Assembly: GCF_031769215.1 (NCBI RefSeq)
Contig: NW_026781969.1
Coordinates: forward strand, 248,001-312,000
Source of the DNA: Ylistrum balloti
Taxonomy: Eukaryota
DNA: 64,000 nt
Direction of reading: 5' to 3'
The stretch's first letter is position 1. Each line of letters opens with the position of its first letter. Shown here piece after piece: positions 12,376-26,462 of the stretch. Below the pieces are notes generated by a model, which was not told where the DNA came from, ran no database searches, and worked only from the letters and a program-made list of their open reading frames with translations. The translations under genes and the position numbers were made by a program.

Positions 12376-15300
12376 CTAGAACATGATCATCTGGCCCTGT
12401 AAAGATACAAAATACAGTGTGCTTTAGAAATGCATGTATTTACCAAAGTCTTGACAAAGATCTGGAATTCTGAATTATAACATAGGTGGTATAGAATTGG
12501 TGCAAGAGACATATCAACTGAAATATTGTTGAAAATCACTGGTAATCTTTCTTCAACAACATAAGTCAGGTCTATAGAATATGTAAACATTTGGCTGACA
12601 TTTTCTTTGCAGATACAATATGAAAATGAACAATACATTTTAAAATGTTTGCCGTTTGACAATGTAGCATCAACAGAAAGGCTTGGTCACCGAACATTAA
12701 GAAAGAGGTTCAACAAGAGCCTATACTCCATGGATTGCTGTTTATATCCTTCCTTTGCACGACCCTTACTGTCATTGACCAGTCCTCAGCTTCGGTGCTT
12801 CCACCAACGACATGATCTACAGAATTGTCCATTTGTGCAGAAAGGACATACCAACCTCAATGTTTTAATAGGAATGTGCTGTCAGTAATGGAACTCTGTG
12901 CATTAAACTACCTTTTGGTTGAGTGATCCAGTACAGTTTGATAGTAAATGAAATGAAAACTGAAAACTTGCACAAATGATTTGCTAAGATGACTGACCAA
13001 TTTTGAACTTATACTCCTAACATCACTTTGAAACCCAAGTATTACTCTCATCAGTTTTAAAAAGCAGCAAGAAGACAGTAAATGTGTATAAATAATGTGT
13101 GAATTTCGAAACTGTAGTCCAAGACAATTAGAATAAATATAACCAGCTAGATTATGTCTTCCTTCAATGCTTTTAGTTTTCTTTTAACTACATCTTCAAC
13201 ATTTAAAGCCCTAATGTAATAAATGCATGGAATTTGAAAAGTATACAGACTGTATCATTCAAAAAGAAAACGAAAGTCACATTGTATTCCAAGCAGATAT
13301 CTGGTTTTCAAATACAATAAATAACAATGCAATACACTGTGGTAATTTACAAATATACTGAGCAATATGGTATCAGAATTATGTGACAAGATGATTACAC
13401 TATGAATTAAGCTAGTGTTAACATAAAATATTTAGCATTTCTTTTTTAAACAAGATTTTAAACTAAATCACTGAAGGTCAAATTCACCATTCCCAGTCAA
13501 CATTCACACTGTAAAACATATGCATATAGCAGTTATACTAAGCTTCCAAATTCTCTTTACTCAACTTTGTTACATGAGGTTGATCAAAAACAGAGAAAGC
13601 AACTAAATGTATTTATGAGTAATTAACATATCTCTGACTATAACAATCTCTTTTTTATTTGAATATGAGTAATATTTTAAGGATCATACCTTCCTCTTCT
13701 TGTCACCTCCCAACTCAAAGTGTTTACAGCGTTTAAGTGACAACTGTTTCCTGTACTTGCATGTGATACATTCCATTCGTAGTGTGATTTTCTTTGTGGT
13801 CTTTGCCTGAAGTCAGAAACAAAATATGTCAATGCTGCTATTAAATCTAAAATAAAAATTATATAACTAATTCATACTAATATTCAGTTCAGATAGAGAT
13901 AGCATGTTTACCATTGAAAGGCCTCAAATAAAAAACAATAGTGTCAATGTTTCACAAATCTGAAGTAATTATTAGTTTAACATTACTTTCTGTTCAAAAC
14001 AGTGCAAGTTTCATTGTACAACAGCACATATAGCATTAGGAACAAAAAAGTGAAGTATAAAGTGACTATGACATGCATCCTCTTTAAATGCAATTGACAA
14101 GATTTTTCTCATTTTCTCTAAATATGCAAACGAGTAGTAAAATATTATCTTAATGGAGAGAATTGACCTCCCATTATCAATATTAATAGTATCCATTTGC
14201 ATGTACACAGCAAATCATAATCGGACATCTAAAAAGTATAAAGCATTTAAAAATGAAGAGAATAATTGCCCAGACAATTATTAAATCAGATCAAATCTTA
14301 AAAAGAAGGAGAGTGGTGGTTATTGGAAACAGGCAGACAAAAAAAAGCAAGGAAGGGCAATTATTAAAAATGAAAAAATTCAAATGTCAAAACAGCATTT
14401 TTACAATATTGTAGTCTAATCAGTGTGGATTACAAACAGGACATATTACTGTAAAAGGTAAGTATAATATCCATTTAATTTGTTGCTTTATCATATAGCA
14501 GGTGTAAATGTTTGCTGAATGTTAACATTACCATGTAAATAATGTGACCATCAATGCTTTCCTCTACAGCAGAAACAAATAAAAAATATAGAACAGTCTG
14601 CGAGTACAGATAGCCAGAGAGGACATGACTGCAAACATAACCATAACCCATACTTAGAGAGAAACTATTATAGGATAGCACTAAAGCATTGATCTGTTAG
14701 TATCTAGGATCAATTGGACAATATTTCGGTTACATAATTAAGGTAAGTGCTGTGTCTGTGGAGAAAAAAAGAGAGGGGTAACTGCCATTATTGGAGGTTT
14801 ATGAAAAACCAATTAAAGGGTAGAAACAATAACAACAAAAAAACTTGTTTGGGGCCTAAAAGCAAGTACAAAAATGTTATGGCTGATTCTCATAGCATGG
14901 GCAATTATTTGAATGTATGTGTTTTTAAAAGCTGGTTGTCAATCCAAATTCTGTTCCATACTCCAATCCAATGTTTTTAAGTTAATTGATCACAGCTCTT
15001 GTTATTATAATCACCTTCTTTCTAAAAATAGGCTTGGTCTGACCTCCGTATCCACTCTGCTTTCTGTCGTATCTTCTTTTTCCTGTGACAAAAATGTCTA
15101 CTGTAAGATTTTTGTAATGGAATAAAAATGATGTGGTCATATATATAATATCTTGTACAATTTTTGAATCATGACTTCATATTCAAATTTGAAGTCACAA
15201 TTTTGCTTTTTTTGACACCTTTGTTTCAAAGCAAGTAACGCAAGACGAAATAGTCATAAGTTGTTTGTTGTTTGACAATGTAGCACCAACAGAAAGGCTC

Positions 15301-18121
15301 AGTCACTGAACATTAAGAAAGAGGTTCAACAGGAGCCTATACTCCATGGATTGCTGTTTATATCCTTCCTTTGCACGACCCTTACTGTCATTGACCAGTC
15401 CTCAGCTTCGGTGCTTCCACCAATGACATGGTCTACAGTATTGTCCATTTGTGCAGGAAGTTAAAGAGAAAAGAATCATTTGATTTCTATCAAGAATACC
15501 GTTTTCAACCAAATTAATGCCATCTCCAAGTAAGTACATCTATATTCTTAGAGGTGGGTTTGCTTAATTAATGTTTAATTCATTGCCTTGTTATTACACT
15601 AAACTGATAAGTAATATGGTTGCATTTAAAAAAAATTTTATCAGTGCACCAATTCAACAGAAACTACTATTAGAATATTTGTTCAATTAAGTATTCAAAT
15701 ATTTGTTTTATATGGTCCACAATTTTAGGAAAGCTTGAAGTATACACTACACACTATAATGTTTTTCCAATACTGAACAAAATGGTTCATAAATCTACAT
15801 TGGCTCATTTTTTTTTGTAATATGATGAATGCAGCTCGTAACTTGGTTAACCAAAAAGGTTGTTAAAAACACTATCAATTTCTCAGCCTAATGGTCTGCC
15901 TTATGAACATGGTTTTAAAAGTGTGAAACGAACAAGAAAAGAAGTCACAGGAAGTGGTATGATGTGAAGACACAAATACATCCTCTCATATTTCAATATT
16001 CAGAAAAAAGTATTGTTCTTAGCATGTATCAATCACTTTTTTTCAATAGAATTACCATCTTACTTCAAAATGTATGAAAATAAAGCTAAAGCCAAATCCA
16101 GTACAATGGTGGCCTGGATAACTTTGTCCATGGATGAGACTGTAGGACAATTGAGAAGGGGCCTACAAAAATGCATTTTCATATACAACTGAAACCAAAC
16201 TGCAAGCTTTTCAGGTGTAAAACTTTGAGCATTGAGAATACATTGATAAATTTACTACGACTCTTCAGAGAAATCCAAGTTTTTTCCTATTATATTTAAG
16301 GGTACACTTCTTCTGGTAGCCCAATCATTAGATTATTTAAAAGCATTTACCTTGGGCGTACAGGGAAGCTCTTCCTGTCTTGTACTGGGTAACTTTATGA
16401 AGGGTATGCCTCTTGCATTTTTTACCCTTGCAAAAGGTTTTCCGTGATTTCGGAATGTTAACCTGAAACATAAGAAATGTGATATTGATCAAAAGTTCAT
16501 CACCATTAAATTCCACTCACATCTTAATTAAAGATTGTAAAGACATTGAGACAGGTACATTTACAGTCTGAAGTCCCAATTATCTAGTTGATAGCCACTA
16601 CAACAATGACAAAAATATAGCAACCAATGGCAAAAGAGCAAAGCCCTTTACCAGTAACATGTACAAACAACTGTGGTCATGGTAACATTGATACACTAGG
16701 ATTCTAAGTGCCATGAAAGTAGTTACTGTAGTCCCCTTTTTACAATACTATATATTTAGCCTTGCTATACTTTTTAAGAAACTACAAAAAACTCCAAGCC
16801 GGTTTTAATTTTTCAGTGCATGACTACTGTAAGTTATGTCAATTGTAAAAAAACACACAAGCATAACTTGTCATCTTCTTAAGATCAGATTGTAGTAAGT
16901 TTCCAATCTTTAGATGAATATTCTTTGCATAAGATGTCATAAAAATGGTGTGATTGATCACTCGATTGAATGCAGTGAACATAGGATTTTAGGTTATCTA
17001 ATGTAAAAGTACTTGTATGTGACAGTCTATTCTGTGTTTTTGATGCCAAGAATTATCTAATTTACATTCTAAAGATGGTAATATACCACTAACCAGCAAA
17101 GCATTGTGCATAAGACTAAAAATACATTTTCTATCAAAGGTTTAAAGAATTATTTAAAACCATCCACATAATGCTGCGAGATTTGTTGTTCTTTCAGATC
17201 AGGTGATCTGGTTATAGGTGCCCTACAATTCGGAAATGTAAAAAATTCAAAGTAAAAATTTACAGTGAATGCACTGTACATCATACAGAAAAGGTAAACC
17301 ATATCACATACAAGATCCAGCCTCTGCAAGACTTAAGTACAACAGATTTTGAAGGATCTTGCAGATTGGGTCACCAAAAAGTAGGACTCTGGATTTTCGA
17401 TTATAGCTAACAGAGGAATATATCTTTAACTGAACTGAACCATATACTTGTCTCACGGAGGCTACATCGATTGGTGGTATCTGGCGAAGGTTGACATTTC
17501 AATCTTACACTATATGTGACATGCATTAGTACAGGTTTTATTGATCAAGTGGTCTTTGAAGTGTGGCAAATTGTAAGAATATCAAAGTTTTGTTTTGAGA
17601 AGATTTGAATGTCATCTGAGGATTTTGAAGGAGCAAGATTTCCATCTACTATATACATCCAAATACCCGTCTTTGTAAACCGGTCACGAGTTGGTACCTA
17701 CAGGCTGCACTGTATTTATTCTAGAACTACGTGAAAAATAGTTCACGTATTCAAAAATACATGAACATGACACAGCAGGCTGGATGACAAAAAAACGACA
17801 TGTATCTATTCAAATGCTGCGCTCCATTCAATCATGACCTGTCCCATATTATGAAACATAAACATCGAAGTAGTCTGTTATACGTCCCTGATTTGGGCCA
17901 ATACCTGATAATACATTCTAAGCGACTGTTTACATGTGTACATCACGTTACAAATAAGTACAAAAACATTATCAATCATGAATATAGATCAAAACTAAAC
18001 GTAAAATGGAATGTAAAAAGCTTGTATCTTTAATTTCATAATATTCACTAAGAGCAAGATGGCTAGTAACAGTCGATGCTTTGAGATAGAACGGTGACAT
18101 CGTTATGAATTTTCTCACCAT
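12376..18121 (-). CDS. RPL36A: 60S ribosomal protein eL42 (L36a/L44)
   Basis: Exons (minus): 18119-18121 (ATG), 16351-16462, 15015-15082, 13690-13806, 12376-12396 = 321 nt, 106 aa: [112 protein letters not shown] on the minus strand at 12335-12340. Confidence 0.98.
12660..12840 (-). ncRNA. Candidate box H/ACA snoRNA/scaRNA, copy A (RPL36A intron 4)
   Basis: Sense to the host gene. 5' hairpin closed by TGCAC...GTGCA, ANANNA hinge (AAAGGA/ATATAA), 3' hairpin (AGCAATC...GATGCT with inner AGGCT/AGCCT and GAAC/GTTC stems), ACA at 12663-12665. About 96% identical to copy B with unrelated flanks. Confidence 0.65.
15276..15456 (-). ncRNA. Candidate box H/ACA snoRNA/scaRNA, copy B (RPL36A intron 2)
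   Basis: Paralog of 12660-12840 (8 substitutions in about 181 nt); ACA at 15279-15281. Confidence 0.65.
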
Positions 18122-18270
18122 TTTGCAGGTCGGTTAGAAAAAGGAAGTGGATTTGCGCAGGTCACCTAATCTTGCCTCTCAGACGTTTGTAAGCAAACTC
18201 ACGTCAATGGCAATTTCGAAGCATGTCAATGACGCCGACTAGACAGGAAGCTGGGAAATCGAAAACAGAG
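18122..18270. promoter_or_regulatory. Compact bidirectional promoter RPL36A/ACAT2 with TCT/5'TOP initiator
   Basis: Only 149 bp between the two start codons. Minus-strand CTTCCTTTTTCT (18136-18147) is a ribosomal-protein TOP tract. ETS-like GGAAG at 18143 and 18246; CRE/E-box-like TCACGTCA at 18199-18206. Confidence 0.8.

Positions 18271-26462
<8,192 letters not shown>

Follow-up and report, generated by a model that had tools for sequence, protein, structure and literature searches.

The RPL36A gene of the scallop Ylistrum balloti carries, in its introns 2 and 4, two near-identical blocks of 186 nucleotides (nt), each of which very probably, judging from sequence comparison among molluscs, encodes an intronic box H/ACA small nucleolar RNA (snoRNA) of about 186 nt. 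The pair lies in a stretch of 64,000 nt (NCBI RefSeq assembly GCF_031769215.1, contig NW_026781969.1, positions 248,001 to 312,000, forward strand), hereafter called the window, to which positions refer unless stated otherwise. As a gene it is of an ordinary kind, and it adds a new invertebrate member to the well-known H/ACA class. Mollusc snoRNAs are almost unannotated, and the gathering thresholds of Rfam miss the RPL36A RNA entirely. The eight copies compared here, two each from Y. balloti, Mizuhopecten yessoensis, the scallop-like assembly GCA_041381155.1 and the caenogastropod Batillaria attramentaria, supply a covariation-supported structure and exact boundaries for its annotation.

The duplicated block and its fold

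A repeat search returned a single long direct repeat in the window, formed by 12641-12844 and 15257-15460 (204 nt, 94%). The conserved unit is 186 nt long and lies on the minus strand, at 12660-12845 in RPL36A intron 4 and at 15276-15461 in intron 2, so that both copies share the strand of their host gene, which is how animals express H/ACA snoRNAs. Exon mapping and the repeat search agree with a preliminary description of the window, which had placed a duplicated block in these two introns in sense orientation; the eight substitutions counted there are exactly those found inside its 181-nt frame, but the extent had been drawn too short, by 5 nt at the 5' end. The host gene, the two copies and the elements of the RNA are positioned as follows, with the equivalent positions of the intron-2 copy in brackets.

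12376-18147, minus strand: host gene RPL36A (eL42), five exons; Pfam PF00935 on all protein hits
~18119-18147, 16346-16462, 15015-15083, 13690-13806 and 12376-12396, minus strand: RPL36A exons, as mapped
12660-12845, minus strand: intron-4 copy of the H/ACA RNA, 186 nt; inferred mature RNA 5' CCUUUCU ... ACAUUG 3'
15276-15461, minus strand: intron-2 copy, 94.6% identical to the intron-4 copy
12748-12845, minus strand: 5' hairpin, RNA positions 1-98 (15364-15461)
12742-12747, minus strand: H box AUAUAA in the hinge (15358-15363)
12666-12739, minus strand: 3' hairpin, RNA positions 107-180 (15282-15355)
12723-12731, minus strand: 5' strand of the predicted pseudouridylation pocket, AUGGAGUAU (15339-15347)
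12696-12707, minus strand: apical loop of the 3' hairpin, CUCUUUCUUAAU, 12 nt (15312-15323)
12673-12678, minus strand: 3' strand of the pocket, UUCUGU, starting 13 nt before ACA (15289-15294)
12663-12665, minus strand: ACA box, 3 nt before conservation ends (15279-15281)

The flanks of the window copies are unrelated on the 5' side, and on the 3' side their similarity decays within about 20 nt. Across all eight copies from the four genomes the boundaries of the block are identical, conservation running from CCUUC to 3 bases beyond ACA between flanks that are unrelated in every copy; the 3' end of the RNA is placed where this similarity stops. With covariance model R1, the intron-4 copy scores 216.9 bits and the intron-2 copy 212.6 bits. 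DNA and covariance-model searches of the whole 648-Mb genome yielded these two copies only, both in RPL36A, and the block is therefore not an interspersed repeat, the finding that the preliminary description had named as fatal to its own proposal. A duplicated block with sharp boundaries might suggest a repeat or mobile element lying by chance in two introns, but the genome-wide count has already refuted this idea, three scallops have the block in matching introns and invariably in sense orientation, and the fold shows covariation; the probability of this explanation is negligible.

For the consensus fold, RNAalifold was run on the six scallop copies, and pairing statistics were then compiled for eight copies with Batillaria added. 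Having been fitted to the model, the eight-copy alignment is biased in its favour; a MAFFT alignment made independently is in agreement with it. The fold begins with a long irregular 5' hairpin (positions 1-98) and continues through a hinge into a 3' hairpin (107-180), which is followed by ACA. Standard pairs occupy 95.9% of the alignment cells over the eight copies, and 18 of the 52 predicted pairs have changed on both sides and are still paired, a number reached by none of 500 shuffles; when the partners were slid by 1-3 columns as a control, there were 1-3 doubly changed pairs and 28-48% pairing. Helices 1-3 make up the irregular stem of the 5' hairpin, which is interrupted by a 5-nt bulge, AAAUG, and capped by a 12-nt apical loop; they are paired in 94-99% of cells and hold ten of the doubly changed pairs. 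The other eight belong to helices 4-7 of the 3' hairpin, which are paired in 93-100% of cells. The hinge hexamer differs from genome to genome (AUAUAA, AGAUCA, AGAUAA and AAAGCA), and since all four versions match ANANNA, the H box has been retained through sequence change.

The consensus fold, its doubly changed pairs and the boundary 3 nt past ACA thus support the order of hairpin, ANANNA hinge, hairpin and ACA plus 3 nt that had been proposed from the window alone. The two compensated stems put forward with it did not survive comparison. The 9-bp (base-pair) stem UGUCGUUGG/UCAAUGACA is paired in 74% of cells and broken in four of the six scallop copies, and UUGAAC/GUUCGG, paired in 86% of cells, shows no compensation and breaks in the other scallops; as conserved helices we rejected both, as they exist in this species only and neither is compensated. 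The long, covariation-supported 5' hairpin has as its 5' strand what had been taken for an extra 5' arm.

By analogy with other intronic H/ACA RNAs, the RNA would be transcribed as part of the RPL36A pre-mRNA, bound co-transcriptionally by dyskerin/Cbf5-Nop10-Nhp2 and set free when exonucleases trim the spliced intron, back to the base of the 5' hairpin on one side and to the position 3 nt past ACA on the other. Ribosomal-protein genes are known to hold paralogous intronic snoRNA copies. The RPL36A pair resembles these in its host, whose 5' terminal oligopyrimidine (5'TOP) tract, CTTCCTTTTTCT, occupies 18147-18136 and is followed by ATG|GT, in its sense orientation, in the presence of multiple copies across scallop genera and in the decay of the surrounding intron; a 5'TOP ribosomal-protein host with paralogous intronic copies, as had been suggested for this locus, is thus borne out. 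Unlike tandem snoRNA copies within one intron, the RPL36A copies occupy two introns, the second of which differs between bivalves and gastropods.

Conservation and copy history among molluscs

Relatives were sought with the 64-codon open frame around exon 3 as query, and RPL36A loci were then retrieved by exact protein look-up. Mizuhopecten yessoensis and GCA_041381155.1 each carry two copies that are 87-92% identical to the window copies, and in all three scallop genomes the copies lie in introns 2 and 4 of RPL36A, in the orientation of the gene. Alignment between the three genes is confined to the promoter/exon 1 region, the coding exons and the pair of RNA blocks, and the blocks, with 88-92% identity as compared to 84-90% for the exons, are at least as conserved as the coding sequence. 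In Batillaria, two 187-nt copies are found in RPL36A introns 3 and 4, with 87.8% identity to each other and about 61% to the scallop copies; a covariance model built from scallops only recovers them over their full length with 100-104 bits (E ~1e-20). The conservation in RPL36A introns of related species, on which the preliminary description had made its case depend, is hence present in two other scallops and in Batillaria, and these comparisons support purifying selection acting on the putative RNA gene pair. In Solemya, a weak BLAST match in intron 2 lacks the loop motif and was dismissed as chance. A search of the literature on RPL36A-hosted or mollusc H/ACA RNAs brought up nothing specific.

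Ribosomal-protein genes in general hold autoregulatory RNA structures, and the blocks might accordingly be read as a conserved structure within the introns that acts in cis on the splicing or autoregulation of RPL36A, rather than as a stable RNA. Yet they reside in different introns (2 and 4 in scallops, 3 and 4 in Batillaria), at varying distances to the exons, and they have the ANANNA and ACA+3 boundaries as well as a match to an H/ACA family model; we consider a cis-acting role very improbable.

Within the four genomes, the two copies are 94.6, 95.2, 97.8 and 87.8% identical to each other, while copies in the same intron of different scallop species share 87-92% identity, less than the copies within any one scallop. 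From this relation we conclude that the copies in each species are, as far as their sequences tell, kept alike by concerted evolution through gene conversion, which would also account for near-identical blocks embedded in unrelated intron sequence. The intron positions of the copies are common to the three scallops; with Batillaria, intron 4 is shared and the intron of the other copy differs. The pair thereby illustrates cleanly how copies in separate introns of a single host gene evolve in concert.

The predicted guide pocket and the probable relation to SNORA81

Guide geometry is present in the 3' hairpin only, with 9 + 6 unpaired nt and a distance from upper stem to ACA of 13 nt in scallops and 14 nt in Batillaria, the class having its pocket top about 14-16 nt upstream of the H or ACA box; in the 5' hairpin, a pocket comes to lie at guide distance only when an invariant GCAC/GUGC helix of 4 bp is opened. 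In the 3'-hairpin pocket, the 5' strand is invariant in the six scallop copies and reads AUGGGUUAU in Batillaria, and the 3' strand varies by transitions only (UUCUAU, UUUUGU). Both strands, AUGG..UAU and UUCUGU, are thus conserved between classes, and unlike the flanking helices they have never changed on both sides, which suggests a constraint beyond mutual pairing. As its sequence has been held from scallop to snail, the 3' pocket is most likely the working part of the RNA, predicted to direct one pseudouridine in some RNA. In a search for signs of a small Cajal body-specific RNA, we found the Cajal body (CAB) box, UGAG, in neither apical loop; one UGAG in the 3' strand of the upper stem of the 5' hairpin becomes UGGG or UGAA in other copies.

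SNORA81, alias HBI-61, is a vertebrate H/ACA snoRNA, whose 28S site 4636 is 4606 in older numbering; its Rfam family (RF01241) has a gathering score of 45 bits. At gathering thresholds, no Rfam family was found anywhere in the window. In E-value mode, SNORA81 was the sole family matched, by seven of the eight copies in three separate searches (26.3-36.8 bits), with the following scores.

Y. balloti, window: intron-2 copy 30.4 bits (E 0.021), intron-4 copy 26.3 bits
Mizuhopecten yessoensis: 28.5 bits (one copy listed at E <= 1)
GCA_041381155.1: 36.8 and 35.2 bits, E 0.002
Batillaria attramentaria: 29.4 and 27.9 bits

The statement that the family could not be recognised is therefore correct with respect to the gathering thresholds, but passes over this recurrent match below them. 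In the cmscan alignments, the apical loop of the 3' hairpin is the same as a highly conserved loop in the SNORA81 consensus; all scallop copies have it unchanged, and those of Batillaria depart from it at 1-2 positions. Both this loop and the pairing of 5' end and hinge in the SNORA81 consensus are found in the mollusc copies. The likeness extends to a length that is unusual for the H/ACA class (179 nt in SNORA81 versus 186 nt), to the two-hairpin layout, to the 5' end ACCUUCUU, which is identical in the Batillaria intron-4 copy and pairs with the purine hinge AAGAAG/AGGAAG, and to the 3'-hairpin apical loop itself, CCUCUUUCUUAAUG, identical in scallops. Unlike SNORA81, which resides in an EIF4A2 intron, the mollusc RNA is hosted by RPL36A with two copies per gene, neither pocket sequence is common to the two, and the region of the consensus helix-96 pocket is closed and divergent in molluscs. 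On balance, these comparisons make it probable that the RNA is a divergent invertebrate relative of vertebrate SNORA81 with another host gene and another guide.

The loop offers a further pairing, as CUCUUUCUU (12696-12707) is complementary to the purine hinge tract AAGGAAGG (12748-12757), and likewise in the intron-2 copy. This complementarity amounts to 8 bp in scallops and 6 bp in Batillaria, and the hinge tract also pairs with the 5' end; an alternative pairing of apical loop and purine hinge is possible.

Several observations weigh against a guide snoRNA of SNORA81 descent. Its folding energy is no better than that of shuffles (z = -0.10), a measure that is uninformative here. In the RPL36A loci of Solemya, Gigantopelta, Tubulanus and Antedon, no relative was detected. 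All SNORA81 scores lie below the gathering score of the family, and a scan of the whole genome with the SNORA81 model, which returned only these two loci, did so at E 0.29 and 2.5. The two strands of the 3' pocket can pair with each other in 95.8% of cells, and the pocket could thus be a weak closed helix. Finally, we scanned for targets after locating the ribosomal DNA (rDNA) of this genome by a short conserved motif and delimiting its 18S, 5.8S and 28S, using both hairpins, contiguous, one-mismatch and gapped rules, a required fit to all copies, and shuffled guides as null. In 18S, 5.8S, 28S, rDNA spacers, U2, U5 and U6 of this genome, no target rose above that null; the best sites common to the eight copies, 18S U813 and 28S U862 (6+3 bp), were equalled by shuffled guides in most trials. 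Of the functional guide RNA proposed at the outset, one canonical pocket is present, but with no target above chance the guide role stays a prediction.

It was conceivable that the RNA is a working SNORA81 orthologue that still directs the helix-96 pseudouridine, which would be U3683 in the 28S of this genome. We take the vertebrate helix-96 guide to lie in the 5' hairpin of SNORA81, based on the consensus lines of cmscan and on the human helix-96 sequence. Both window copies match RF01241 over its full length, and human SNORA81 guides the equivalent site, 28S U4636 in helix 96 (10.64898/2026.10.06.757013; PMC8759569). The 28S of this genome keeps the target U, equivalent to human U4636, together with its 3' flank UGCUUGG, and scallop AAGCAC can pair with GUGCUU, and UAAG with UUUA, giving 9 bp in all. 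However, AAGCAC lies in the apical loop of the 5' hairpin rather than beside an upper stem, and its place is taken by UGCUC in Batillaria. Where the human pocket would correspond, the mollusc RNA is closed by the invariant GCAC/GUGC helix; the unpaired part of this region differs between the classes (AAAUG versus CCAAG), and its 3' strand, GUGCAA, does not match GGUUUA. The 9-bp match arises only with a pocket defined after the fact. When the helix-96 site, GGUUUA-U-G-UGCUUGG, was set against every plausible pocket, none gave a canonical fit. Retention of the helix-96 function is in our view quite improbable. Because neither the score of the family nor its helix-96 guide is reached, we have not filed the RNA as SNORA81.

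The RNA might also belong to a ribonucleoprotein of the H/ACA class without guiding at all, its 12-nt 3' apical loop being the working element that docks or chaperones while ribosomes are assembled, in the manner of U17/snR30 (SNORA73), an H/ACA RNA that acts in pre-rRNA processing and guides no modification. Indeed no element is better conserved than the loop when scallop, snail and the consensus of the vertebrate family are compared, no pocket sequence is shared with SNORA81, and the target scans found none; by analogy only, U17 likewise combines H/ACA architecture with conserved elements other than a recognisable pseudouridine guide. The internal-loop motifs of U17, however, have demonstrated complementarity to 18S, and none was found in the RPL36A RNA. 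When the conserved loop, hinge and strands were searched for duplexes with ribosomal RNA (rRNA), they did no better than shuffles, the complementarity of the loop being matched by 72-95% of them. The 3' pocket moreover combines canonical geometry with a conserved sequence, and homology with SNORA81 is itself unproven. A purely non-guiding RNA therefore seems unlikely.

We return to the reading as a probable SNORA81 relative that guides from its 3' pocket. If the link to SNORA81 holds, the family is older than the split of protostomes and deuterostomes; the host has changed (RPL36A versus EIF4A2), the helix-96 guide has changed or was lost, and the apical loop has been kept. In its most far-reaching form, which we would assign a low probability, this reading would make the RNA part of an old SNORA81 lineage whose host gene and two guide pockets were exchanged between molluscs and vertebrates, while the loop and the pairing of 5' end and hinge may have persisted for over half a billion years. 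Were this true, an RNA catalogued as a plain guide would have a guide-independent role in its loop, such as docking, chaperoning or conformational switching. SNORA81 is of recent interest for the tuning of translation in human cancer cells, and in view of this interest the conserved apical loop is a concrete element to test.

Further observations at the RPL36A, ribosomal DNA and small nuclear RNA loci

Besides the RNA blocks, the sole non-coding stretch that can be aligned with Mizuhopecten is the promoter/exon 1 block at 18111-18339, with 82% identity to positions 1280-1511 of the fetched Mizuhopecten locus. A thiolase gene lies divergent from RPL36A, a few hundred bases from the 5'TOP start (18223-18363, plus strand), and this neighbour is also found in GCA_041381155.1 (locus positions 1-1351) and in Solemya (locus positions 1-1420); in Batillaria, Gigantopelta and Tubulanus, a SMAP-domain gene takes its place beside RPL36A. 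Mizuhopecten has, in addition, an intronless RPL36A copy with the full 106-codon frame (2501-2821 of the fetched locus), which is probably a retrocopy. In RPL36A intron 1 of the window, the histone 3' stem-loop family is matched weakly (17134-17186, plus strand, 18.4 bits, E 0.55), probably by chance.

In the 28S gene of the rDNA unit of this genome (5178-9210 of the fetched locus), 28S positions ~2643-2700 and ~2902-2960 are the same conserved stretch, about 259 nt apart, reflecting either an artefact of the assembly or a genuine duplication within the gene. Two contigs, C336 and C614, contain stray fragments of the 28S 3' end outside the rDNA array, which begin at the same point, carry several substitutions and are preceded by unrelated sequence. 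Genes for small nuclear RNAs are clustered as well: at least 25 U5 genes form a tandem array with a spacing of about 946 nt (contig C627:2171890-2195654), and a short tandem run of U6 genes is located on contig C684:313964-316689.

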